DNA from: Podarcis filfolensis
Lineage: Eukaryota
DNA: 64,000 nt
Assembly (NCBI GenBank): GCA_964270895.1
Contig: OZ185444.1
Reading direction: 5' to 3' (one strand)
The position numbers were made by a program, and so were the translations under genes. The notes below the pieces were generated by a model, which was not told where the DNA came from, ran no database searches, and saw only the letters and a list, made by a program, of their open reading frames with translations. This document shows, in pieces, positions 80 through 63,625 of this stretch. Each line of letters opens with the position of its first letter. The stretch's first letter is position 1.

Positions 80-13233
<13,154 letters not shown>

Positions 13234-19700: not shown

Positions 19701-22700
19701 AGACCACATTCTAGACCATTGTGCGGAGTTTATTTCATAGCCTATGTCATGCTCCCATGGTCCTTTATTGCATCAAGGGGGGTTGTGGGATTTTGGAACA
19801 GTATTTTATATATTGTGGATACCATTCCTTTACTGTGTTCCTCTGCTGTCAGGAGAAGGTTTTTGAAGGTGGTCAAGGGGCTAGAGGCTGCTGATTCTAC
19901 TGTTGGATTGTTTAAGAAGGCATGTAGTTGATGATGTGTTAGCCAAGTTATTTGGGTGTTCCCTAGTTTGTCCTGTATTTCTTGTGTTGGTATGGGTTTG
20001 CTGTTGTTGTAGAACTCTTTTAGACAGTGTTGGCCTTTGGCTAGCCTGGTTTTTATCTGGAGGTTTTATGCTGCATGTTGGAATAGTGGGTGGTAGGCCA
20101 GGGGGGTTAGTGGGGATGGGGATAGTTTGCCTACTTTTCCATTCCATGCTTTAAGCATGGACTGTTCAGTGTTGTGGAGATTTTCTTTAGTTTGTTTTGG
20201 AGAAATGGGGGTGCTGTTGTGGGGATGCTTTCAATGGTTTCTTTCTTCAAGTGGACCCATTGTTTTGTCTCGTCTTCTAGAATATACTGGATTATGTGGC
20301 GTACGTGGTTGGTGATGTAATATGATTCTATTTTGGGGATTCCCTATCCTTCTGAGGTGGGGAAGCACAGGTATTTGAGGCTTATTCTTGACTTTTTGTA
20401 TGAGAAAATAAACGAGGGTAGTTTTTTTCTGCCACTTCTGGAGTTGGGCTGGGGGAATCCAGGTTTGGAATAAATAGATTAGTTTTGGGAGGGTGATCAT
20501 TTTGCTCATGGCTATTTTGTCTGAGAGGGTGAAGTTGGTGTCGTTCCATTTCCTCAAGTCTCTGTTGATTTGCCATCATGTGCACGTGCTCCTTTCTTCT
20601 TGTTGACTGGAACATCAACATTTTTAGGAGGAATGTAGGAAGGTTCAAAAAGTAAATGCTTCTAAATGGGTGGGGCTGCCTTTAAAAGGTGACTTGGAAG
20701 CTACAATTAATCCAGAATGCAGCAGCTAGACTGGTAACTGGGAGCGGCCACCGGGACCACATAATGCCGGTCCTAAAGGATCTACATTAGCTCCAAGCAC
20801 AATTCAGAACGTTGGTGTTGACATTTAAAGCCCTACAAGATTTCAGCACTGTATACCTAAAGGAGCATCTCCATGCTCATTGTTCAGCCCAGACATGGAG
20901 GTCAGTTCTGAGGGCCTTCAACAAGGAACCACACAGGTGGTCTTTTTGGTAGTCACACCTGCCATGTACATTGCATGTACCTCCTGCCAGATGTGAAAGA
21001 GTTAAACAACTGTATAATTTCTCGTAGACATCTGAAGGCAGCCTTATTTGGGGAAGCCTTTAATGTTTGATGTTGCTGCTGCTGCTGCTTTTCCTGCATT
21101 TTTGCTGGAAGTCATCCAGAGTGATTGGGGTAAGCCAGTCAGATGGGTGGGGTATAAGAAAAATAATTATACATACAAATGCAGAATCAGCATTTTAATA
21201 TCTTTGATAATACTCTTAACAGAGCAGTCCATACTACTTAAATTTATAAAATCCATGTAATCAATTGCTATTGCCAGTTTTGTTTGTCTTAGGATGAATT
21301 GTGTCAATACTTCTTCAGAAGATAGATAACAAGTGTATTTCATATTCTTGCCTCCAGGATTTACTTGGAATATTGAAGATGACTTCAAGCCTGTCCCTGA
21401 ATGCTGGATTCCAACAAAGGAAATAGAGTACTGCAATGGAAAACCTTTTCCTGATGAAAATGGACATATTCCAGGTAGAAAAACATAGCTTAACACCAGA
21501 AAAATCTGTTCCAAACTTTAGTCATTTAGAGATCTTAAATACTTTATGTAATAATTTATTAATTTACTCATTCAACAATTATAACTGAAAAACAAGCCAC
21601 CCATATAAATTTGTTCTAGAGTGGCCTATCAATATTGTAAACAAGTAAGTTGGGAATTACCATGTCAAAAGTCATACTTGCATGGTGAATTAGTCCTTGT
21701 ATAGCCTATTTCTTGTTCAGGTAGCTTGATATAGCTTGTTTACCTTCACTATATTATTGAGGGACTAAGGTTGAAATGTCATGACAGGGCTGATCTGAAT
21801 AACATGCATTCTCCAGATCACACTGAAGTGCAATATTGAGACAGAATTGTTGGAGGCGTTCCCTAGTGAGCAATATAAATTTGGATATATGCAAGACCTC
21901 AGTGTCCGATTAGAGATTATTTTTTAACCATTGGTTTTTCATATTTGAGCAGTATTAATGTTCATATCACCTGTAATATTTTTATAAACAATGGAGCCAA
22001 CCTAAATAGGGGGAAAATATTGTTTTGTTTTTTTACAGGCTGGGTGCCCGTGGAACAAAACAGCAAACAATATTGTTGGCATACCTCTGTTGTTGACTAT
22101 GAATTTGAACTAGCGCTCATTCTGAAGAATCACACTGAGGAACCTGGTCTTCTGGAAATTAGTCTAGTGCCCTTATCAGATCTCTCAGAACAAACTCTGG
22201 AGCTTATTGGAACGAGCATTAATGCAAATCCATATGGTAAGCATATCTTATATTCATCAACAAGATATTTTTCTGAGAGCTTTATATCAGGCACTGGTAA
22301 TAAACACTGTGTACGATTATTGCAAACACAATCTTTTAAGAATTACAATACACAGCAAAACCTTTGGCAAACAAACATAATAATATGCAGCTTGCTTGAA
22401 GTGTTTACAACTAAACAAATAACAAATAAAAGCATCATGTTGATAAAGCCTAGAGCAGTGGTCGGCTGAGCTGCAGCAAATAGAAGGGTTCCTGTCTGTC
22501 TTTAGCTGAATTGCTCAGACTCTAGAAACAAAATATTTGGAAAACGGCTACAAGTAGCATGGAGCTATAAAAGCAAAAGCCCAAGAGAGTTGGCTAAGGG
22601 AGTATCATTGACGATTAGGAAATAAAGGTGGGACTTGGAAACTTCCGTAATACAATAAAATAGTTGATTGTATTTGTTTAATAATCTTTTAAATAGGCTT

Positions 22701-25057: not shown

Positions 25058-25246
25058 TTAATCAATAGAAACTCTGGCTGGAATATCTACCTGAACACCA
25101 AATTGTTCAGAAAGTGTTTTCAATTTCTCTTCCAAGAGAATATTTTTTTTAACTTCTTCATTATAGTTGTATTTTAGATCCTCAATTTCTTCAAAAAAGG
25201 ATGGATCAAAGTGGTCCAGTTCATTTTTCAGCTTTCTGACTTCTTC
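25058..25246 (-). CDS. CEP290: CEP290 terminal exon 54 ([28 protein letters not shown]...ARVSID*)
   Basis: ttcctcattag acceptor, TAA at 25060-25058. Confidence 0.95.
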   Translation of the reverse strand, partial: EEVRKLKNELDHFDPSFFEEIEDLKYNYNEEVKKNILLEEKLKTLSEQFGVQVDIPARVSID

Positions 25247-31200: not shown

Positions 31201-34200
31201 CGTTTCAGGAGCTCACACATTTCCTTTAAATCAGCTACTTGGTTCTAAAGAGAATAAAATAGTTTTTCCCAGCTGAAAACTATACTCTAAAAATTATGCA
31301 GTTTACACTGAAAGTAATTGATCAGAACCATTATTATCTAATGAATTTTTCTGTTTGGGGTAAATGAAGGTTATATATGTGACTTATCATATAAATGATT
31401 CATAATGAAAGGACTCGTGAACCCCAAAGTATACATTGGCATTCCATGGCACCAGTCAACACGTTGAATGTAAAAAAATATACCTTTAATCTTGGCAAGT
31501 CTTTGTTGGCCTGTTCCAGCTGGAATCGTAATTCCATATTTTCAGATGATAGCATTAGGTTCTCCTTTTGAAGCTCTTGTTCTTTTTGATATTGATCATC
31601 TGATCCTAATCCTGATGTCTTGGCAAGCAGAAAAGGAGAAAGATTAGTATCAAAATGCTGAATATTTGCATTGTTTCACTTGACAAATAGCAATGCAATT
31701 GTAACATTCTGGTAAATGCCTGATCAGTTTATCCATAACATTTTTGTCTTTGGGTTGGTCACTGATATATGGCGTCTGATACAACACTTGTCAAAAAGAA
31801 ATGTTGCTCACTGCAAAGGCTTTAAAGGTACTAGCAGTTTGAATTGTGCTTGGAAATGGACTAGAAGCCATTTCCAAGAATAGTCCCAGTGAGCAGACTT
31901 ACAAGATATATTTTGAACGAACAGCAGCTGTCACATACACATGATGCATTATAGTAGTGAATCCTGGGTCCTATTCACACGATAATTCCATGGGTACTGT
32001 TCCACTGAATTCAACCAGAATTTAACAGCAATATTTGATTTGAGCTCAACTCACTGCAACACCTGCCATGGTTCTGTTATGAAAATATTAACTACTTTGT
32101 ACAGCTAGCCACTATGCACAGAACTGTATGCTAATATGCTGCTCATGGTGGCAAATAACTACTTGTAGTATTATATGCACAGATAGCAAATAAATTCAAG
32201 CCCTATTTGGGTGCACATGCAACACATGGAAGGTGGTAAGGCCAGGTGGCAGGGATGCAGCAGAGATATGGAGGCTAGATGTTTGGGCCCCTTCCGACTT
32301 CCCTCCCAGTGACTAATCACAGGAGGGGCCCCTTTTCCAAATCTACAATTCTATGACTGAACATATAGGACTTGAACAAGCAACAGCAACAAGACACATT
32401 CACAATGAACCAGAAACAACGCTCAGGATATATGCTGGAATGTTTCTGTTGTAGAAGTACAAGCTCATATTTTAGTACAATTTTTTACATTTCTTCACCG
32501 TCCTGGATGTTGTGGTAGCCTATTTCATCCTATGCACTTGTATTCTAGAGCAAAAAGCCTCAGGTGTCGACATTTACTATGATGGTGCTGTAGGTTAAAC
32601 TAGGAAACGGGGTTTCACTACATTACATACTTCAAGCAGGATCAGCTACACAAAGGATTGGTAAAGGGGAAAAGCAGGGAGTTCTTGTTTTTGGCAAACC
32701 TGAGGAACTTCACAACACTCTGCAGTCAGGTCAGCCCTCTCTTGCTCAGTTTGATGGCTCTCATGGGCATCTTCTACCATGATCTCATCATTATTTTTTT
32801 CAACTTCTGTATCGGAATCGCTGGGCTGATTAGCAGCTTCCTCCGAGTTAGGCTGAATGGAGCTCTTTCCATCAGAACAAGATTCATGCCCTGTTGCTTT
32901 TTCTTGTTCATCTTCACCACCTTCATCTCCATCACCACCACCACTGCCACTGGAATGCTTGCAAGTTTCTTCTGTTTCTCCTTTGGTTATTTCACATTCT
33001 TGGTCAATTTTCTCTTCTTCAGCAGAACCATTTTTCTGTTCTGCATTCTCTTCAATGGAACTCGTTTTTGGAGAGTTGCTCTTTTTACCTTCTGATGCTG
33101 CCTCTAAATCCACTTGATTTCCCCCATTTTCAAAGTGCTGTTCTGGAATTCCATTGACAGCAACACCTTTGGCAGCCTGATGGGATTCGTCTGTAATATG
33201 TGTCCCCTCATCGTCCCCATCATCATCTGTGTTAGTCATATCATCAAAAGCTTGGTGTCTTGACTTGGTGTTGCCCAACAGAGTCCTCTTAGGCAGGTAT
33301 TTCAGATGTTTGTGCTTAGTGAATTTGTTAGTAGTAAGAGAAGTATTAGCCAATGCAGCTGTCTCACATGGAGAACTCTGATACAGAAGAAAGAGGTAAT
33401 GTTGCATAGAAAGAAAAGTAGTAGATAGTAAAGGAAGGATGACACCTATTCACATTAATGTAACTTAATCGGAATATAGCTTAACTGCAAGAAGAAACAA
33501 GATGCAAATCAGGATGATGTGGACTCGTTCAGTACATCAATTTTATCTGGTTTCAGTTCTCTAAAGCTTAATTCATCCTCTGCTTCCACTTGTCTCTAAA
33601 CTAAGCTGCCATATTCAAATAAAAAATTTTTTCCCTGTCCTTAAATCTAACAGAACTTTGTGGCCCATCTAGTTCAACATTCTGTTTTTAACCAGTCAGG
33701 TGCTCTTGGTAGGTACTTCACTGTTTGTCCCCGCATCTAATACTCTGAGATGCAGACTGCCTCTGGAGATTGAAGGTTCCATTTAGTCGTAACAAAAGAG
33801 CCACTAAACAGACCTTTGAGTTTGTCTATTTTTTTCCCCAAGTTATCCAAGCTAGCAATTATCACTGTACTGCAGTAATGACTACTATAAGCAGACCACA
33901 AGTTGTTTGAAGAAGTATTTTCTTTTGTCTTTCTTGAATACACTGCCACACCAGCAATTTAACAGTACAACCCTGAATTATAACATTATGAAGGAAGATG
34001 AAATTTCCATAATTTATTTTTTTCCATAACGTTAACAAGTTTTTAAAATCAGTATCATACTCTCTTTAGCCTTCTTTTTGAACTTAAAAGCCCCAAACAT
34101 TTTAATCTTTCTTAAGATGCGAGTTGGGTCCAACCCCTGGTCGTTTAGTGCCCTTTTCTGGTTCTTGAAATAGCAAGGTTAAAACTGCACAATATGTGCT

Positions 34201-37200
34201 TGCATCATAACATAAGGATACACTGACACTGATTTTATATCCTTTTTCTAAGAAGTGCCTTACTCTGAATTTGCATTTTTCACTTCTACTAAGTTCATAC
34301 CTTTAAGTGGGGGTATTCAGATGTTACTAAGTTCAGTGTATCTCTCTAGTGGAGATGGAATTGAAATTCCCTTTTTATCTAAGCCTGCTCAGGCAGTAAT
34401 TCTTCCCCCATTACAGGACCTTATATACTTTCTCATCACCCCTCAAGACAGGCATTGATGCTTCAATCTTCTCACTTCACTCCTTGCAATATAAAATCTG
34501 AAGGTTCTCCTAATGTTAGTACAATGCTATCATTACAAAACAACCAGGTACCGACCCATTGGTGTTCAGAATTACAAAGCTTTAAGTACCCGGTTTCTGC
34601 AGCACTTGCACAGGCAATAAAATTCTCATCAGCTGAGATAAAGAACAGAAACAAGACAGCTTACACAATGAAGGCTACAAGTTGAATGTAAACACACACA
34701 CACACACACACACGGCTGCATAATTCAAGTAATAAGAATAGATTAACCTACTGAAGGTCTTGAAAAAGTGTCTCTGGAAAGCTGTTTCTCCAATACAAGA
34801 AGCTTTTCTTGTAGGTATCTGTTTTTTAAGTGTAAATCTTCTACAACAGAATCTCGAGGGACAGCATACTGTGTCCTGCATAAAAAGCATGTGAGATTGC
34901 AGAACCAGTGCATGACTTGACATACGATTTACATTTTTAAAAATTATTCTACTTAAACATGGGTAAGGATGAGTAGCATTAGATATGCACCAGCTTTCCT
35001 ATAATGCACATGCTATCCTACAGCATTACATAAAATATATCTATCCACACACATATTGATCTGGTTCAGATGAAATGCTAAACTATGCTTTAGTTTTACA
35101 TGCATAACTCTCGGACTTGTACACTACCCATTCCCCTCTCCTCCTCCAACATGACTATGAACAATTGATCAGAAGGTTTCACATCCATTTTCAATTAACC
35201 ACGATTAATCATTTCATCAGAACTCCTAAAAATACATATTTCTGCACTGAACTTGTTAATAAGAGGGTGCCACAGAAAACTTTAATCCTCTTTTAAGAAA
35301 TACCTGTTTGTGAAAAAGCAGCATTCCTCTCTAAAATATCAAGAGTAGCCTAATTTGTACATAAAGCTAACCCATAGCTGTTTAGCTAAAGTATGGTTTT
35401 TCTGAAAATCTGAACCCAGCTTACTACTTTACCCATATTTGTTTCTGCCAACAAACCATATTGTGAAGCCACAATTGGTTATTGGGTTACATTGATTTGG
35501 AGTAACGCACAAACCCCAAAGCTATGCTTGACCATGGTTTGTTGAGCCAACTCACCCCAACCACTCACCAAGCTACAGTCATGAGGCAAGAACAACTGGA
35601 AAGCAAACTAAGCTTTAGAAAAATAAGTTGTGGCTTGTTTGCCTGTCTGCTTCTTGAACAAAACCATGGTTAAAACAAACAAGTATCCAGCATTGTGTGT
35701 ACATTAAAACTAACGTAATTTTTTAATGCCATGCTTGTATTAATTCCTCAAAATGGTTAAAATGTTCAGCTTCCAGGAACAGTGCTCTCTTGAAATGTAC
35801 TTAATAAATCAAAAGTGCCTATTTAGAAAAGACCATAAAAAACAGAGCACTCTTAATTTCACTTTTTTTGGAAGTATTTCTTACTTTAGGTGAACAATCT
35901 CATTCTCCAAATCTATATTTCGTTTTCGTAGCTCTTCCAGCTCTCTCTCTGATTCAGAGGCTCGTACTCCTACAACCTGATCAACAGTAACACCACAGCT
36001 CTTGAGTTTCTTCTGCAAAGCAATTTTTTCTTTATCCGCCCTGTAGTATTTAATGGATTTGCATTAATATAATGGTACATTTGCTTCCATACAAAATAAC
36101 ATTTGAAGATTAATTGGTCTGCTTAATCTGATGCATGCCTACTCAGAAATCATTCCTACTCAGTTGAATGAGATTCCCTCTCAGGAAATGTGTACAGGAT
36201 TGCAGCCCTACTTGAGGAAGTTTTTTCCAGGAGTACCTATAATTAGGAGATCTAGAAAACTGTGCCAGTGGACTACATTTGAGAAAGTGCTGTCTGCAGC
36301 CTTATAAACATACAATACACTACTATAGCACCATGTCCTTGATCAATAAATAGTGGTATGTCATATTGCTGTAAGTTTTGTTAATTAAAGTAAGCTTACT
36401 TTGAAAAAAGTTCCTTTACTGTGTTTAACTGTTTGGCTAAGGACTCTACTTCCTTCTCCTTTTCTTTCAGTTTGTTCCTCATTCCTTCCGTTTTCATCTG
36501 CCATTTCTTACTTTCCTCCCATCTAATTAATTCTTCCTTAGAGCTCTGCAAAATGACCAAAAAAAAATATGTAAAGTTCTCCAATTTTATTTCTAAAGAG
36601 TGAAAACATCCACATTTAAGTCTGCTTATTTTTCTTTAATAAATGCACGCATAAATGTTTGATGTGCTGCTTTTTCTATCCTCTTCGCTGTGGAATAGAG
36701 AACCCTTTTTGGACAGACAGGACCAGTCATGCTATCTGGCCATTCATTCATTTGCATTCTGCCTTTGGGGGCACAGCCTACCCAAGAAGCCTTGCAATAT
36801 CAAAACCGTATAAAACACATCACAACCCTGCCCACAAGTATTTCATTCATAACAAAGCAAATGAGTCATTATAACGCAGAAGAAAAACATGATAGTGAGA
36901 AATGATGTAAGCTAAATTTATTTTAGTCGTGCATCTCTCATACCTTGTCCTCTCTTGGGGTTTTCATTTCTGACTCATCGCTCTTCTTTCCTAGTTCACT
37001 TTCCAACTTCTTAATTTTTCTTTGAAGTTCCTCTATCAGGCTTTGGTCATCAGCTTTTCCCTGAAAAATTGGGAAAAGTTTAAACTAACTTTAATTGCCA
37101 TGCATCATGACTGTGGACATTGGGAGCATTTTAGCAGGTATCATCACTGCACAACCAGATGCGATATTCAAACTCCATTGAAATGAATGCAAAATACACA

Positions 37201-39785
37201 GTGGCTGCCTTTTCTGGATTATGCTCTTAATTAGAGAAGCACTGGCTCTCAGAAATGATTATACACACACACACACACACACATACACACAGGCACACAC
37301 ACATTAAGCGAAAATGCAAGCGTTCTACACATGCAAATATTCTTCATTCAAATAACCAAGTTTAATGCTTCAAGTATATAAATAAGATTATAATTACGAT
37401 TTAAATAAGACACAAGCACAGATACATAGATAAGCTGGCTGATTTGCACTTAATCATAGTTGCCAGGTTTTTATTTATTCAATTCATTTATATATTGCAA
37501 ACTCAGATAAATATATATGCAGTGTACAAAATTCTCAATTAGAACCAAAACAACGTTCAGATGATTTGTTGCAGTGCAAAACCAGCCAACCAGTGACTCA
37601 AGAAATATGCAATTTATTTGTATACTACCAAAACAATGTTCTTTGTTTTATAATTCAAAATATATTTACCTGAATTGCATTGGTTAACCTTTTAATTCGC
37701 TTTTTCAGTTCTTCATTTTCTTTTTCCATCTCTTCTTTCTCCCTTAGAAATTTAGTGTGGGCTTTAACTTTTTTCTGAAGCTCGTGATTTAAATCATCCA
37801 CCTCATCTAGTAATGAATTCTCTTTATTTTTGCTTAGCTTGAGGGCATCTTTAAGTTTTGAAAGTTGGTCATTTAAATCTTCTAACTGAATCTAAGAAAA
37901 AAAAATTATGATATATTATTTCAGGACTGCCAACAAAATGAACAAAGAAACAAATGACAATGCATGCCATGTCAGACAATAAACATCTTTGCTAATATTG
38001 GGTGATATCATGGTCAATTAAACCCAGAACGGATCCACTGAAAACAACATACAAGTCAAATGATCTCTATTTGTCTACTCTGAATGTGACTAATCTTAGA
38101 TATCACCTACTAAAAACACAGTTCTAAAAAAAACAAACCCTGGCCATGTATATTTGTGACCAAAAAAAGCTAAAAGGAGAGATCCTTTTTTTCTTAACCA
38201 CACCAAATACTCAGTTGCATTAAGACTCTATGCTGCTGGATTCAACATCAAAAGCTGGGGCCGTTGGTGCATCAAGCCCAGTATGATCAATTCTTATAGG
38301 CAGCACCTGTCTCTTGGAAAGTTACTAACTGAAATAATTTTAGTGGCAATGCTAGAGATACAATCCAGAAATATATGTACACAAAATGACATGGTTTACC
38401 ACATAGCAGCCCTACTACCACATAGTAAATAAATCCTGAACTGCAAGCCTACATTCACCCAATTTTTCTAAACACCAATAAAGTATTATGATGTATCAAT
38501 TTATTGTTCTTCTAGGGAAGAAAACGTGCAAAACCATGGGTAGTATCCCATACATCTTGCAATCCATGTGCCAGGTTTCAAGGAAGCACAAGTATGTTTT
38601 TTTGTGGAATAGACTACAATTACAGACACATTATCAGTGTACCTTGATCGCAGTAATACGGAACACAGTTTCATTCAATTTTGTGCAGGAGGCCCACACA
38701 CAATGTGGTGAAATTAACAGAAACTGCTAAGTAGCAGTGTCTGGGAAAGTGCATCATGGGGCTTTTAACAATCAAAAGTACTATTTGAGGACTGGAAGAC
38801 AGAGCAGCGTATTGGTGTCTGTAATGCTCACGGTGACATCTATCCCCTCTGGTGTTCTGCTTTCACATCAAGCCAATATAGGTAAGACTTCACTTCCTGC
38901 TCACCCTCAGTTCCTTTGTTTGCTTGTCAACGATCTGTTGAACGTTCATGTGTGCCTCTTTTTGTGATGCTACAGAAATAATCTGTTGTTCTGCAGCAGC
39001 TGTCATTTCTGCTCGGAGCTCCAGAAGTGCTTTACTCAAAGCCTGAAAAATATTTATCAATCTTAAAAATGATAAATTTGATGAAAAACAATAAACACAA
39101 ATCCTTTTAACATCTAGGTCAAAATTTTGCAGTTATATGCCTATGTGCTTTGCTGGACAGCTGAAGAAAGCAAGCAAGTAAAAAAAAATCCAACAGGGAT
39201 AAAAGACAGGAGTAAGATATATGTCTATGACACAAAGTGGGAAAAGGTTAACAGTAAAGGTAAAGGTAAAGGTACCCCTGCCCGTACGGGCCAGTCTTGC
39301 CAGACTCTAGGGTTGTGCGCTCATCTCACTCTATAGGCCGGGAGCCAGCGCTGTCCGCAGACACTTCTGGGTCACGTGGCCAGCGTGACAAGCTGCATCT
39401 GGCGAGCCAGCGCAGCACACGGAACGCGGTTTACCTTCCCGCTGGTAAGCGGTCCCTATTTATCTACTTGCACCCGGAGGTGCTTTCGAACTGCTAGGTT
39501 GGCAGGCGCTGGGACCGAACGACGGGAGCGCACCCCACCGCGGGGATTCGAACCGCCGACCATGCGATCGGCAAGTCCTAGGCGCTGAGGTTTTACCCAG
39601 GTTAACAGTACATAGAGTTAATATTAGGTTTAAATAATAAAGTAGCCTAATATTCAACAAGCTCTCTGCTTAATATATTGCCATCATTTCTGGTGGCAGT
39701 TAACATAAGGCAATAAGAAGAGCCATGCTGGTTCACACCAGTGGCCCATCTAGTTGGGGTAACCAGTCAGATTGGGGGGGTTACA

Positions 39786-61800: not shown

Positions 61801-63625
61801 TGGAGGATGGATGGTGGCTAACAGATTGAGGTTGAATCCTGACAAGACAGAAGTACTGTTTGGGGGGGGGGGACAGGGGGTGGGGGGGTGTGGAGGACTC
61901 CCTGGCCCTGAATGGGGTAACTGTGCCCCTGAAGGACCTGGTACACAGCCTGGGAGTCATTTTGGACTCACAGCTGTCCATGGAGGCACAGGTCAATTCT
62001 GTGTCCAGGGCAGCTGTCTACCAGCTCCACCTGGTATGCAGGCTGAGACCCTACCTGCCTGCAGACTGTCTCACCAGAGTAGTGCATGCTCTAGTTATCT
62101 CCCACTTGGACTACTGCAATGCGTTCTATGAGGGACTACTTTTTAAGGTGACCCAGAAACTACAACTAATCCAGAATGCGGCCGCTATACTGGTGACTGG
62201 GAGTGGCCACCGGGATCATATAACACTGGTCCTGAAAGGCCTACATTGGCTCCCAGTACGTTTCTGAGCACAATTCAAAGTGTTGGTGCTGACCTTTAAA
62301 GCCCTGAACGGCCTCGGCCCAGTATACCTGAAGGAGCGTCTCCACCCCCATTGTTGAGCCCAGACACTGAGGTCTTCCTCTGAGGGTCTTCTGCTGGCTC
62401 CCTCACTGCAAGAAGCGAGGTTACAGGGAACCAGAGAGAGAGCCTTCTTGTTAGTGGCACCCTCCCTGTGGAACACCCTCTCTTCATATGGCAAGAAAAT
62501 GACCAACTATATGACTTTTAGAAAACATATAAAGGTAGCCATGAATTGGGAAGTTTTTAATGTTTGATGTTTTAGTATGTTCTGATATGTGCTGTGAGCC
62601 AGCCAGATGGGCAGGGTAAAAATAATAAAATTATTATTAGTTAGTATTATTAAGATTAAGATTACATAATACATTGTACACTGAAAGCACATATATTGAT
62701 GGTAAAATCTGTAATATCGCCACTCTAAAACAGGGACATAAAGTAAATTTCTGTTCATTGTGCAGTACTCTATACTCATGCATAGATTTCTAATGTTTAA
62801 CACAAATATTTGTTTGGTTTCTTCTTATTGGACAGAAAACTACCTGCTGGAGGGCCATAACGCTGCTCTTGTCAGCATCAAGGTGGGCCATTTTCAGTTT
62901 CTCTCTCAGAGTTAACAACATTTGCTGATACTCAATGATTTCTTCATCTTTAGAAGCCAAGATTCCCTGCAAAGCAGAATATGGTAAGGTGGAAAATCTT
63001 CAACAAAACATAAATCTTAAAAGGTAGCTGAAATAAAATATGCAATACCTTCCATTCTTCCACTTTTTCATTCACAGCTGCCATGAGAGGGTCATCTTCT
63101 TCATTCTTTGCTTTAAGTTGCTCCATTAACTCATGCACCTGTAAGATACCATCAATATATGATGCATGAAATATGACGTATGAAAATACAAGCTATGAGT
63201 GTATTACTCCAGATGCATTAACAAAGGGAATCAATGGTAATCCAGTTTTTACTCTATTTGCTTACTGGATCAAATACTTATTTAATGATCAATTTGTCAT
63301 CACTCAGTGGTCACGCAGGATGTGTCATCTTTCTGATTTGATCTTTCTGTTTTGGTCCATTGTATTCCAATTTTAAGGTCTTTTATAGTTGTACAGTATC
63401 TTTACTAATCTGCTTCTGGAAAGAAGGTAGGTTACATTTTACCTGAAACTTATACTGTTCCTTTTCCTTTTTTAGTTGGTCCACAACAATGTCAGATTGC
63501 TGCACGATAAGCTTCATTTTATTGTACTCATCTGTCATCTTTTCCATTTCTTGCACCGATTCTTCTAGATTCTTCCTCATTTCCTGATTCTGAGCCTCTA
63601 ATTTTTCATTAGCTTCGGTCAAACT
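25058..63625 (-). CDS. CEP290: Centrosomal protein of 290 kDa, partial (exons equivalent to human 10-54; exons 1-9 lie beyond the window)
   Basis: 45 consecutive in-frame exons with coiled-coil peptides recognisable as CEP290 (e.g. [11 protein letters not shown]...[44 protein letters not shown]). Sizes match human exon sizes as I recall them (e.g. 456, 165, 108, 135, 200, 214 nt). Confidence 0.98.
26047..26135 (-). CDS. CEP290: CEP290 exon 53 ([29 protein letters not shown])
   Basis: atccctag acceptor, CAT|GTAAGT donor, 89 nt, phase 1-0. Confidence 0.88.
27234..27337 (-). CDS. CEP290: CEP290 exon 52 ([16 protein letters not shown]...)
   Basis: AG/GT bounded, 104 nt, phase 2-1. Confidence 0.92.
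27430..27503 (-). CDS. CEP290: CEP290 exon 51 ([24 protein letters not shown])
   Basis: AG/GT bounded, 74 nt. Confidence 0.94.
27595..28140 (+). mobile_element. CpG-rich island in CEP290 intron 50, probably the 5' end/UTR of an L1-like element
   Basis: Starts abruptly at GGGACTTCCGGTCAGCGCCGGCG; dense CpG over ~27600-27900 in AT-rich intron; no recognisable ORF1; right boundary approximate. Confidence 0.45.
28268..28409 (-). CDS. CEP290: CEP290 exon 50 ([16 protein letters not shown]...ILKEQ)
   Basis: AG/GT bounded, 142 nt. Confidence 0.95.
29377..29549 (-). CDS. CEP290: CEP290 exon 49 ([21 protein letters not shown]...KSIVIT)
   Basis: AG/GT bounded, 173 nt. Confidence 0.95.
30048..30170 (-). 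CDS. CEP290: CEP290 exon 48 ([19 protein letters not shown]...RKELKK)
   Basis: AG/GT bounded, 123 nt. Confidence 0.95.
30428..30592 (-). CDS. CEP290: CEP290 exon 47 ([25 protein letters not shown]...)
   Basis: AG/GT bounded, 165 nt. Confidence 0.96.
31158..31244 (-). CDS. CEP290: CEP290 exon 46 ([29 protein letters not shown])
   Basis: AG/GT bounded, 87 nt. Confidence 0.96.
31484..31618 (-). CDS. CEP290: CEP290 exon 45 ([21 protein letters not shown]...DLPRLK)
   Basis: AG/GT bounded, 135 nt, phase 0-0. Confidence 0.96.
32700..33377 (-). CDS. CEP290: Candidate non-canonical CEP290 cassette exon in intron 44, 226 aa, acidic/disordered
   Basis: Acceptor cctctttcttctgtatcag, donor CAG|GTTTGC, 678 nt with no stop, phase 0-0 matching the flanking exons 44 and 45; 53/226 residues are D/E. 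Confidence 0.6.
34752..34875 (-). CDS. CEP290: CEP290 exon 44 ([25 protein letters not shown]...FSRPS)
   Basis: AG/GT bounded, 124 nt, phase 2-0. Confidence 0.96.
35885..36040 (-). CDS. CEP290: CEP290 exon 43 ([24 protein letters not shown]...)
   Basis: AG/GT bounded, 156 nt. Confidence 0.96.
36400..36545 (-). CDS. CEP290: CEP290 exon 42 ([16 protein letters not shown]...KELFS)
   Basis: AG/GT bounded, 146 nt. Confidence 0.96.
36944..37060 (-). CDS. CEP290: CEP290 exon 41 ([22 protein letters not shown]...)
   Basis: AG/GT bounded, 117 nt. Confidence 0.94.
37262..37302. repeat. Imperfect (CA)n microsatellite
   Basis: Direct reading. Confidence 0.9.
37670..37891 (-). CDS. CEP290: CEP290 exon 40 ([27 protein letters not shown]...)
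   Basis: AG/GT bounded, 222 nt. Confidence 0.95.
38905..39042 (-). CDS. CEP290: CEP290 exon 39 ([22 protein letters not shown]...)
   Basis: AG/GT bounded, 138 nt. Confidence 0.96.
39257..39598 (-). mobile_element. Sauria-type SINE (CpG-rich, apparently young), 12-bp TSD
   Basis: (ACCTTT)n tail, B-box GGTTCGAATCC, direct repeat AGGTTAACAGTA at 39245-39256 and 39599-39610. Confidence 0.9.
39702..39895 (+). mobile_element. CR1-derived short element interrupted by a nested 65-bp insertion (39756-39820)
   Basis: AAGAAGAGCCATGCTGG..CAGTGGCCCATCTAGT|CAGCATCCTGTTCTCACAGTGG; a homologous uninterrupted copy lies on - at ~59150-59240. Confidence 0.6.
40137..40350 (-). CDS. CEP290: CEP290 exon 38 ([13 protein letters not shown]...[27 protein letters not shown])
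   Basis: AG/GT bounded, 214 nt. Confidence 0.96.
41416..41675 (-). mobile_element. 3' end of an L2/CR1-like element with (AAT)n tail
   Basis: (TAT)n at 41416-41455 adjoining sequence shared, in opposite orientation, with 43960-44290 (GGCGCCAGGCAAAA, CCAGGCCTTTGG). Confidence 0.55.
41863..42062 (-). CDS. CEP290: CEP290 exon 37 ([30 protein letters not shown]...)
   Basis: AG/GT bounded, 200 nt. Confidence 0.96.
42911..43018 (-). CDS. CEP290: CEP290 exon 36 ([21 protein letters not shown]...KQTAL)
   Basis: AG/GT bounded, 108 nt. Confidence 0.96.
43433..43702 (-). CDS. CEP290: CEP290 exon 35 ([31 protein letters not shown]...KARE)
   Basis: AG/GT bounded, 270 nt. Confidence 0.96.
43847..43892. 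repeat. (GATA)n microsatellite
   Basis: Direct reading. Confidence 0.98.
43960..44290 (+). mobile_element. 3' end of the same L2/CR1-like family
   Basis: GTGCCAGGCCAA...CCAAGCCTTTGGCTGA...ends with AATTTAATAAATAAA. Confidence 0.5.
44441..44575 (-). CDS. CEP290: CEP290 exon 34 ([26 protein letters not shown]...)
   Basis: AG/GT bounded, 135 nt. Confidence 0.96.
44709..44816 (-). CDS. CEP290: CEP290 exon 33 ([21 protein letters not shown]...)
   Basis: AG/GT bounded, 108 nt. Confidence 0.96.
45008..45172 (-). CDS. CEP290: CEP290 exon 32 ([21 protein letters not shown]...QQSK)
   Basis: AG/GT bounded, 165 nt. Confidence 0.96.
45680..46135 (-). CDS. CEP290: CEP290 exon 31 ([20 protein letters not shown]...TRGAQK)
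   Basis: AG/GT bounded, 456 nt. Confidence 0.97.
46265..46376 (-). CDS. CEP290: CEP290 exon 30 ([37 protein letters not shown])
   Basis: AG/GT bounded, 112 nt. Confidence 0.96.
47150..47354. mobile_element. Tc1/mariner-type MITE (related family, CpG-rich)
   Basis: TA-flanked imperfect TIRs CAGTCATACCTCGGGTTACG / CAGTGGATGCTCGGGTTGCG. Confidence 0.75.
48084..48108. repeat. (TG)n microsatellite
   Basis: Direct reading. Confidence 0.95.
48242..48393 (-). CDS. CEP290: CEP290 exon 29 ([19 protein letters not shown]...)
   Basis: AG/GT bounded, 152 nt. Confidence 0.96.
49064..49269 (-). CDS. CEP290: CEP290 exon 28 (...[21 protein letters not shown]...ETKFAE)
   Basis: AG/GT bounded, 206 nt. Confidence 0.96.
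49860..49971 (-). CDS. CEP290: CEP290 exon 27 ([33 protein letters not shown]...)
   Basis: AG/GT bounded, 112 nt. Confidence 0.96.
50398..50571 (-). CDS. CEP290: CEP290 exon 26 ([19 protein letters not shown]...TNLEHLE)
   Basis: AG/GT bounded, 174 nt. Confidence 0.96.
51033..51263 (-). CDS. CEP290: CEP290 exon 25 ([12 protein letters not shown]...[10 protein letters not shown]...LQRFK)
   Basis: AG/GT bounded, 231 nt. Confidence 0.96.
51657..51759 (-). CDS. CEP290: CEP290 exon 24 ([20 protein letters not shown]...KEYY)
   Basis: AG/GT bounded, 103 nt. Confidence 0.95.
52284..52399 (-). CDS. CEP290: CEP290 exon 23 ([22 protein letters not shown]...[11 protein letters not shown])
   Basis: AG/GT bounded, 116 nt. 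Confidence 0.96.
52785..52860. repeat. Compound (TG)n(AG)n microsatellite
   Basis: Direct reading. Confidence 0.98.
52917..53066 (-). CDS. CEP290: CEP290 exon 22 ([15 protein letters not shown]...[11 protein letters not shown])
   Basis: AG/GT bounded, 150 nt. Confidence 0.96.
53465..53629 (-). CDS. CEP290: CEP290 exon 21 ([32 protein letters not shown]...)
   Basis: AG/GT bounded, 165 nt. Confidence 0.96.
54588..54730 (-). CDS. CEP290: CEP290 exon 20 ([22 protein letters not shown]...PSLERLVN)
   Basis: AG/GT bounded, 143 nt. Confidence 0.96.
55048..55132 (-). CDS. CEP290: CEP290 exon 19 ([28 protein letters not shown])
   Basis: AG/GT bounded, 85 nt, phase 0-1. Confidence 0.94.
55463..55555 (-). 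CDS. CEP290: Candidate non-canonical CEP290 exon in intron 18 ([31 protein letters not shown])
   Basis: Acceptor ttacttgttctctag, donor GAG|GTAGTT, 93 nt, phase 0-0, helical/coiled-coil-like. Confidence 0.72.
56040..56612 (-). CDS. CEP290: Candidate non-canonical CEP290 cassette exon in intron 18, 191 aa (LSFHLDSE...[21 protein letters not shown])
   Basis: Acceptor atcttcttttcttttcag, donor GAG|GTGAGA, 573 nt with no stop, phase 0-0 matching exons 18 and 19. Confidence 0.72.
56983..57095 (-). CDS. CEP290: CEP290 exon 18 ([20 protein letters not shown]...EVKEK)
   Basis: AG/GT bounded, 113 nt, phase 1-0. Confidence 0.92.
57656..57743 (-). CDS. CEP290: CEP290 exon 17 ([29 protein letters not shown])
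   Basis: AG/GT bounded, 88 nt. Confidence 0.96.
57867..57967 (-). CDS. CEP290: CEP290 exon 16 ([33 protein letters not shown]), GC donor
   Basis: catttcag acceptor, GAG|GCAAGT donor, 101 nt. Confidence 0.94.
58810..58972 (-). CDS. CEP290: CEP290 exon 15 ([23 protein letters not shown]...LRGRL)
   Basis: AG/GT bounded, 163 nt. Confidence 0.96.
59532..59704 (-). CDS. CEP290: CEP290 exon 14 ([10 protein letters not shown]...[15 protein letters not shown]...DYES)
   Basis: AG/GT bounded, 173 nt. Confidence 0.95.
60575..60698 (-). CDS. CEP290: CEP290 exon 13 ([26 protein letters not shown]...)
   Basis: AG/GT bounded, 124 nt. Confidence 0.96.
61790..62640 (+). mobile_element. L2 LINE 3' fragment in CEP290 intron 12
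   Basis: [11 protein letters not shown]...[16 protein letters not shown]...[13 protein letters not shown]...LQLIQNAAA...LHWLPV...[16 protein letters not shown], with an AAT-rich tail. Confidence 0.9.
62844..62966 (-). CDS. CEP290: CEP290 exon 12 ([17 protein letters not shown]...[12 protein letters not shown])
   Basis: AG/GT bounded, 123 nt. Confidence 0.96.
63049..63138 (-). CDS. CEP290: CEP290 exon 11 ([30 protein letters not shown])
   Basis: AG/GT bounded, 90 nt. Confidence 0.96.
63443..63625 (-). CDS. CEP290: CEP290 exon 10 ([38 protein letters not shown]...)
   Basis: AG/GT bounded, 183 nt. Confidence 0.96.

Follow-up and report, generated by a model that had tools for sequence, protein, structure and literature searches.

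Exon 4a of MAPT, the exon of Big tau, encodes about 250 amino acids (aa) that are acidic and disordered and whose length is conserved while their sequence diverges (PMC12896622). The ORF15 segment of RPGR, a connecting-cilium protein, is terminal in its gene and consists of purine-rich sequence for Glu-Gly repeats; an intron read-through form of it also appears in the annotation (PMC3563624). Photoreceptor-specific exons that depend on Musashi carry a signature of UAG clusters within 200 nucleotides (nt) downstream of the 5' splice site and of CU-rich PTBP sites upstream, and among them is a microexon of at most 30 nt in mouse Cep290 that is conserved from fish to mammals (PMC4991804, PMC9509328, PMC6952364). 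The present analysis concerns CEP290 in a lizard. In a 64,000-nt stretch of Podarcis filfolensis DNA (contig OZ185444.1, assembly GCA_964270895.1), hereafter called the window, the segment 32700-33377 on the minus strand is very probably a genuine CEP290 coding exon, spliced between exons 44 and 45 and kept by selection.

The closest analogy for the peptide encoded by this acidic exon appears to be exon 4a of Big tau, with RPGR-ORF15 a looser one. What would be shared with Big tau is a single large alternative exon for an acidic, disordered segment of conserved length in a microtubule-associated protein. On the CEP290 side the insert comprises 205-226 aa in the eight lineages compared, with 33-53% identity, a net charge of -19 to -33, an isoelectric point of 4.3-4.9, low hydrophobicity and a predicted local distance difference test score (pLDDT) of 45. 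The two differ in that the insert has no sequence homology to MAPT exon 4a, phmmer returning only seven reptile orthologue clusters, in that the host of the CEP290 insert is a coiled-coil transition-zone protein, and in that the insert is reptilian so far, while Big tau is vertebrate-wide. With RPGR ORF15, the exon has in common that an acidic, low-complexity, alternatively used coding segment belongs to a protein of the connecting cilium, the two proteins being part of one interaction network, and that a read-through form is found in the annotation. ORF15 is, however, terminal, whereas the CEP290 exon is internal and in phase 0-0. The parallel to ORF15 had been drawn in an earlier note on this DNA and turns out to be weak, as the window peptide has no Glu-Gly repeat array (E 15%, G 8%) and is homologous to its own orthologues only. 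The glutamylation that the note had considered possible, which in an ORF15-like domain would be the work of TTLL5, belongs to this weak parallel and is speculative for the insert. The host gene is shared with the Cep290 microexon, which lies at another place in the gene, and putative UAG clusters downstream and a CU-rich upstream intron would be shared with Musashi-dependent exons as a class; the acidic exon differs in its size of 678 nt and in being found only in reptiles, and its possible dependence on Musashi is suggested by motif counts. The alligator entry KYO17388.1, a computational model of a partial protein, contains the orthologous exon with the same two junctions.

The acidic exon and its reptilian orthologues

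The earlier note had described the segment as stop-free and in phase 0-0, which is borne out by 226 codons with 0 stops. The acceptor at 33378/33377 reads ...cctctttcttctgtatcag^AGT (the caret marks the exon boundary), with a long pyrimidine tract ending in CAG, and the donor at 32700/32699 reads CCTCAG^gtttgc. The flanking exons had been assigned correctly as well: exon 44 ends in ...FSRPS (34752), exon 45 starts with TSGLGSDD (31618), and both are in phase 0. The open frame around the segment (32649-33449, 801 nt) is indeed the longest of all six frames in the window. The ATG-initiated open reading frame (ORF) at 33407-32646 (253 aa) has its first codon within the pyrimidine tract and continues past the donor for 17 codons. 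The composition of the peptide was also given accurately, with 53 D or E among 226 residues and a short basic stretch; the first 44 residues are basic (8 K/R versus 1 D/E) and the remainder is acidic (52 D/E versus 12 K/R). Codon periodicity is strong throughout the exon (G 42% at position 1, A 47% at position 2, T 38% at position 3). When the local 1.1 kb was shuffled with dinucleotides preserved, none of 5000 shuffles reached 678 nt (mean longest frame 213 nt, maximum 543 nt), and in 200 shuffles of the whole window the longest open frame measured 458 +/- 70 nt, with a maximum of 855 nt. The claimed absence of repeat-element motifs stands: no repeat family within the window overlaps the exon, which contains only micro-repeats of 23-30 nt in two to three copies. 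The window peptide has no Pfam match at E values up to 10, and no Rfam match was obtained in the 3.5-kb interval around the exon.

An exhaustive phmmer search of 1.84 billion representative proteins yielded only seven clusters (192-264 aa), all of them reptilian. They include Podarcis muralis XP_077790922.1, annotated as 'uncharacterized protein LOC144328972' and 90% identical to the window peptide, Pogona vitticeps XP_072857936.2 (partial, 53% identical), and the sea turtles Natator depressus CAM5081768.1 and Dermochelys coriacea XP_043348499.1 (40% identical). The remaining four of the seven clusters are represented by Logan assemblies, and one of them also holds Alligator mississippiensis KYO17388.1. 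This partial entry of 935 aa is named 'centrosomal protein of [290 kDa] isoform C', and phmmer matched it to the lizard peptide with about 37% identity. It reads ...EREFSRETFSRPS ^ NTVHDN...EVCENLQ ^ TSGIGSDDQYQ..., that is, the insert is joined to the orthologues of exons 44 and 45. The exons of the alligator protein map onto the window one by one and in the same order, as far as the 3' end of CEP290 near 25061. The insertion junctions proposed in the earlier note are thus matched exactly by a deposited gene model.

The orthologue set (n=8) consisted of the window and seven fetched loci, L001-L007, which comprise Podarcis, Pogona (L002), a sea turtle (D. coriacea, L003), a crocodilian and three further reptile assemblies. 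Where a contig extends to the exon 44 orthologue, the acidic segment follows it at a distance of 0.7-2.1 kb, and where one extends to the exon 45 orthologue, the segment precedes it by 0.8-1.5 kb; contig L007 reaches neither exon. In tblastn comparisons exon 44 is 75-100% identical to the orthologous exon in L001-L005, and it is colinear with residues 248-289 of the alligator protein. The Logan contigs carrying the acidic ORF are all unspliced.

The exon had been called hidden. This is true insofar as we found no published description of it in the literature on CEP290, on sauropsid or lizard exons, or on novel cassette exons; it is not true of the databases, where the exon is already annotated. 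Predicted isoforms are divided on its placement: the alligator CEP290 model includes it, whereas RefSeq gives it as separate LOC proteins in three species (Podarcis, Pogona and Dermochelys). With Natator, stand-alone protein entries for the acidic ORF exist in RefSeq/ENA for four species. The acidic exon would be an undescribed, lineage-restricted alternative exon for a predicted disordered insert in a well-known gene. Because it is present in squamates, turtles and crocodilians, the sequences date it at least to the common ancestor of these living reptiles. The ancestor of squamates and archelosaurs lived about 280 million years ago.

The longest CEP290 products on record measure 2696 aa in Podarcis, 2460 aa in Pogona and 2767 aa in Dermochelys. 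The Podarcis length would fit inclusion of the 226 residues, but it would fit equally well two candidate exons in intron 18 (573 + 93 nt = 222 aa), and was therefore not counted as evidence. The larger of these candidates belongs to the second-longest open frame of the window (56001-56636, minus strand, 636 nt), which lies within an intron on the CEP290 strand, has no Pfam match and contains a basic stretch; the smaller one is located at 55463-55555.

With exon limits set by the conserved AG and GT, the orthologues measure 678, 678, 633, 615, 624, 648, 657 and 636 nt. The earlier note had proposed to look at frame preservation, at indels and at dN/dS, and all three speak for a maintained frame. 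All eight lengths are multiples of three and free of stops, fitting the phase-0 neighbours; summed over the eight species, frame 1 contains 0 stops in 1723 codons, as compared to 69 and 256 in frames 2 and 3. In a nucleotide alignment made without codon constraint, all 28 gap blocks are multiples of three. For the pair formed by the window and the fetched Podarcis locus, 15 indels fall into the flanking introns, three of them multiples of three, and the exon has none. A codon model gave a dN/dS ratio (omega) of 0.65, and setting omega to 1 lowered the log-likelihood (lnL) by 9.84 (2dlnL = 19.7; same tree, with kappa fixed at its free estimate, a minor approximation). Random point changes to the lizard exon create a stop in 3.3% of cases, and the tree length is about 6.5 substitutions per codon, so that by our arithmetic tens of nonsense changes would be expected under neutrality; 0 were observed. 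Amino-acid divergence among the lineages outside the lacertid pair amounts to 50-67%. When the 3.4-kb interval from exon 44 to exon 45 of the lizard is compared with Pogona, turtle and other squamates, the acidic exon, with 20-85 nt of adjoining sequence at either end, is the sole alignable island besides exons 44 and 45; elsewhere the intron does not align. Within the peptide, the KHLKYP block has a mean pairwise identity of 0.68, versus 0.16-0.52 (mostly 0.2-0.4) in other blocks. As judged from these alignments, selection keeps the open frame, its length, its charge and a few short motifs, and not the bulk of the sequence. A gene on the opposite strand was rejected as a candidate, all three antisense frames having 3-15 stops in every species.

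Splice sites, regulation and competing gene structures

The AG of the acceptor is invariant; it is embedded in (C/T)AG^AG in all seven lineages aligned and in AAG^AA in the crocodilian copy. The donor reads CAG^GTTTG(C/G)CA in 8/8 lineages, with only the C or G at +6 varying. Conservation extends 44-61 nt into the upstream and, in squamates, 50-85 nt into the downstream intron, as opposed to 6-28 nt for constitutive neighbours. An alternative exon under regulation is typically recognised by weak but conserved splice sites and by conserved flanking sequence. Given the good acceptor, the weak but invariant donor and the unusually conserved flanking intron, inclusion of the exon would appear to be regulated and not constitutive. 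Where the donor is not used, the frame would continue for 15-29 codons into the intron before reaching a stop, producing the ORF of about 250 aa that RefSeq lists as LOC proteins.

The most enriched trimers in the 200 nt upstream of the exon are TCT, CTT and TTC. Downstream of the donor, UAG triplets in the window start at 32648, 32620, 32602, 32579, 32547, 32532 and 32522, with a cluster at positions 153, 168 and 178 of the 200 nt that follow the donor. Over the eight species, 48 UAG occur in these 200 nt versus 23.4 expected, an excess of 2-2.5-fold in every lineage. The corresponding ratio is 0.57-0.85 downstream of exons 44, 45 and 11 other CEP290 exons; for the window as a whole it is 0.69. 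Among the 64 trimers, only CCT is more enriched downstream than TAG, which is depleted (0.59-fold) upstream of the acidic exon. Ranked against all 200-nt windows of the respective locus, six independent lineages fall into the top 1.4-17% (Fisher p = 6e-4). This pattern would be compatible with an exon that is activated by Musashi in photoreceptors or other Musashi-high cells; we regard this as a tentative lead and not as a result. To the photoreceptor- or sperm-specific isoform supposed in the earlier note, it lends an indirect hint on the photoreceptor side.

In principle, the conserved open segment could be coding without being a CEP290 cassette: it could belong to a nested transcript on the same strand, as in the RefSeq LOC models, or form an alternative last exon. 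The product would then be an independent acidic protein of about 250 aa, or else CEP290 would be cut after exon 44 and carry an acidic tail. The separate protein entries XP_077790922.1, XP_072857936.2 (partial), XP_043348499.1 and CAM5081768.1 are in line with this arrangement, but the alligator model uses both cassette junctions. As to the 5' end, both turtle models begin in a small upstream exon of their own (MSNLSLQ, about 5001-5021 in L003) that is joined through a perfect CAG^GTAAAA donor to the acceptor of the acidic exon. This mini-exon is, however, unalignable to the crocodilian and the lizards, an upstream ATG is missing in L002, L006 and L007 and occurs at varying distances elsewhere, so that no start codon is conserved, and protein conservation starts exactly at the acceptor. 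As to the 3' end, the turtle models run through the donor of the acidic exon, and the first six to seven read-through codons are weakly alike in the non-lacertid lineages (HFSSP / HYSSP). Yet the read-through tails of 15-29 codons are unlike between lineages in both length and sequence and offer no conserved C-terminus, and the donor GTTTG(C/G)CA is invariant as a string of nucleotides even where the read-through residue changes from C to W. AATAAA or ATTAAA is present 230-260 nt past the donor in L006 and L007, whereas no poly(A) signal is found within 800-1080 nt in the window, Podarcis, Pogona and Dermochelys. Taken as a whole, we consider a nested or terminal gene structure improbable. In its full extent, the turtle mini-exon may cover 54 nt in phase 0-0, TRLEEFQLLHKMSNLSLQ, at 4968-5021 of L003, between exon 44 and the acidic exon. 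Its acceptor is ...ctacag and its donor CAG^GTAAAA, and its ATG is the start of the RefSeq LOC122455835 model and of the Natator model.

A reading in which the frame is open by chance, or in which a former exon decays in a purine-rich part of the intron, in either case without present function, has on its side the weak constraint on amino acids (omega 0.65 overall, about 1 for one pair), an exon identity between the lizard and Podarcis that is no higher than that of the introns, and at least 1 of the 200 whole-window shuffles that reached an open frame of 801 nt (maximum 855 nt). It does not account for a frame that is open in 8/8 lineages with 28/28 frame-preserving indels and zero stops where tens are expected, nor for an omega significantly below 1 and two invariant splice sites in the only alignable island of the intron, and its probability is very low. 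Lower still is that of an exonised fragment of a transposable element or a retrocopied gene. Large lineage-restricted exons sometimes arise in this way and the window has interspersed repeats elsewhere, but it contains no other copy of the exon, no Pfam domain was detected, phmmer returned the seven orthologous clusters and no paralogue or transposable-element protein, and all reptile orthologues placed so far share its location between one and the same pair of exons. Both the chance and the repeat reading were excluded because the frame has been kept open and the exon stands as an alignable island across 3.4 kb.

Several observations weigh against a regulated CEP290 cassette exon. The sole spliced evidence is one computational alligator gene model; RefSeq models the ORF in three species as a separate gene reading through both splice sites, and its longest Pogona CEP290 product (2460 aa) is without the acidic exon. 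The donor is weak, with a 6/9 match to the U1 consensus CAG^GTRAGT, and the UAG enrichment is modest in each single lineage (top 1.4-17% of windows). Amino-acid constraint is weak too: most pairs have an omega of 0.4-0.8, and the pair L005-L007 has one of about 1.0. The window and Podarcis share 95.0% identity in the acidic exon, compared with 95.7-96.0% in the introns and 99-100% in exons 44 and 45. Finally, no bird, mammal, amphibian or fish counterpart was found in phmmer, profile and word-indexed protein searches, tools that are poorly suited to this purpose. The word-indexed searches, queried with a 9-sequence profile, the alligator insert region and an archelosaur-weighted profile, gave no additional taxa; they are limited by length and shared words, and their blanks are weak evidence.

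The predicted insert in the CEP290 protein

If spliced between exons 44 and 45, the cassette exon would add 205-226 disordered residues to CEP290, a short basic head with K-x-KHLKYP-x-K being followed by an acidic tail rich in Ser and Thr. AlphaFold2 run with the alignment predicted no secondary structure for the insert, with the highest pLDDT in the KHLKYP block. A single-sequence prediction in the alligator context showed helices up to ...FSRETF, a low-confidence helix over the first 20 residues of the insert, about 200 disordered residues and then a confident long helix (pLDDT 80-92) from DDQYQREQEF... onwards. Since the predicted helices end before the insert and resume after it, the models put it at a natural interruption of the helical structure in the last fifth of the protein, some 430 residues before the C-terminus (432 in alligator). 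This site would be downstream of, and not inside, the microtubule-binding region reportedly mapped by Drivas et al. 2013.

The insert may act as a flexible, negatively charged spacer or projection that carries a few linear motifs. In a model outlined for CEP290, the C-terminus sits on axonemal microtubules and the N-terminus on the membrane, with a closed state held by both termini (PMC10914257). Against this background, the insert might affect the way in which the C-terminal part of CEP290 extends from the axoneme-proximal region or folds back onto it; it could change reach or self-association, or repel the acidic tails of tubulin. One may further imagine a 'big CEP290' in reptiles that is switched in a Musashi-type manner in photoreceptors or sperm, has altered autoinhibition or axoneme docking, and was lost in mammals and perhaps in birds. 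This combination as a whole is speculative, and we consider it rather unlikely. If true, the 'big CEP290' module would regulate the ciliary transition zone in a lineage-specific and hitherto undescribed way, with RPGR-ORF15 and Big tau as its functional parallels.

Features of the window and significance for CEP290

The features of the exon and its surroundings are collected in Table 1.

Table 1 Coordinates of the acidic exon, its flanking CEP290 exons and associated sequence elements in the window
Feature	Position	Strand	Description
CEP290 exon 44	34752..34875	-	124 nt, ends ...DTFSRPS in phase 0, donor TCA^GTAGGT
Upstream intron flank with pyrimidine tract and AG acceptor	33378..33438	-	AG at 33378-33379
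Acidic exon	32700..33377	-	678 nt, phase 0-0, 226 aa, net charge -33
Most conserved peptide block	33288..33317	-	consensus K-x-K-H-L-K-Y-P-x-K; K23, H24 and L25 invariant
5' splice site, intron +1 to +8	32692..32699	-	CAG^GTTTG(C/G)CA, weak but invariant
Proximal downstream intron, candidate splicing-regulatory region	32500..32691	-	blocks CTGCTTTTCCC, TGTGTAG and TGTAG, plus 7 UAG
Read-through stop codon	32646..32648	-	17 codons past the unused donor; ends the 253-aa read-through ORF
CEP290 exon 45	31484..31618	-	135 nt, phase 0 start; identity 84-100% in L001, L002, L003 and L006

At 34690-34713 (minus strand), a (GT)n microsatellite begins about 40 nt past the donor of exon 44. Pogona has a comparable GT stretch at 3041-3073 of L002, upstream of its exon 44; these simple repeats probably arose independently. 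An element of about 230 nt occurs twice near the C12orf50 region (5226-5456 and 8815-9045), the copies being about 84% alike and 3.6 kb apart. The ends of this element are mutual inverted repeats (TACAGTGGTACCTC... and ...GAGGTACCACTGTA), and it looks like a mobile element of the miniature inverted-repeat type. Dispersed direct or inverted repeat pairs at 20680-21074 versus 62139-62571 and at 2721-3047 versus 39261-39593 (70-82% identity, blocks of 55-129 nt) are presumably interspersed repeats within and beside CEP290. In the leatherback, a model for RLIG1 (C12orf29) at 10758-11760 of L003 (minus strand) runs towards the 3' part of CEP290 and is located only some 4 kb past the acidic exon, which fits the tail-to-tail arrangement suggested in the window, with the CEP290 end near 25061.

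Few ciliopathy and blindness genes have received as much study as CEP290, whose domain map and isoforms derive almost entirely from mammals. Direct medical relevance of the acidic exon is limited unless a mammalian counterpart exists. For annotation, the exon is at present scattered between CEP290 isoforms and spurious 'uncharacterized LOC' genes, and it is well suited to finding out which properties of a disordered spacer are maintained by selection. A module kept by reptiles means that the C-terminal region of CEP290 tolerates a large acidic, disordered insert at one helix break, and that some cells probably use it. This bears on the design of shortened or engineered CEP290 constructs and on models of CEP290 autoinhibition and axoneme attachment.

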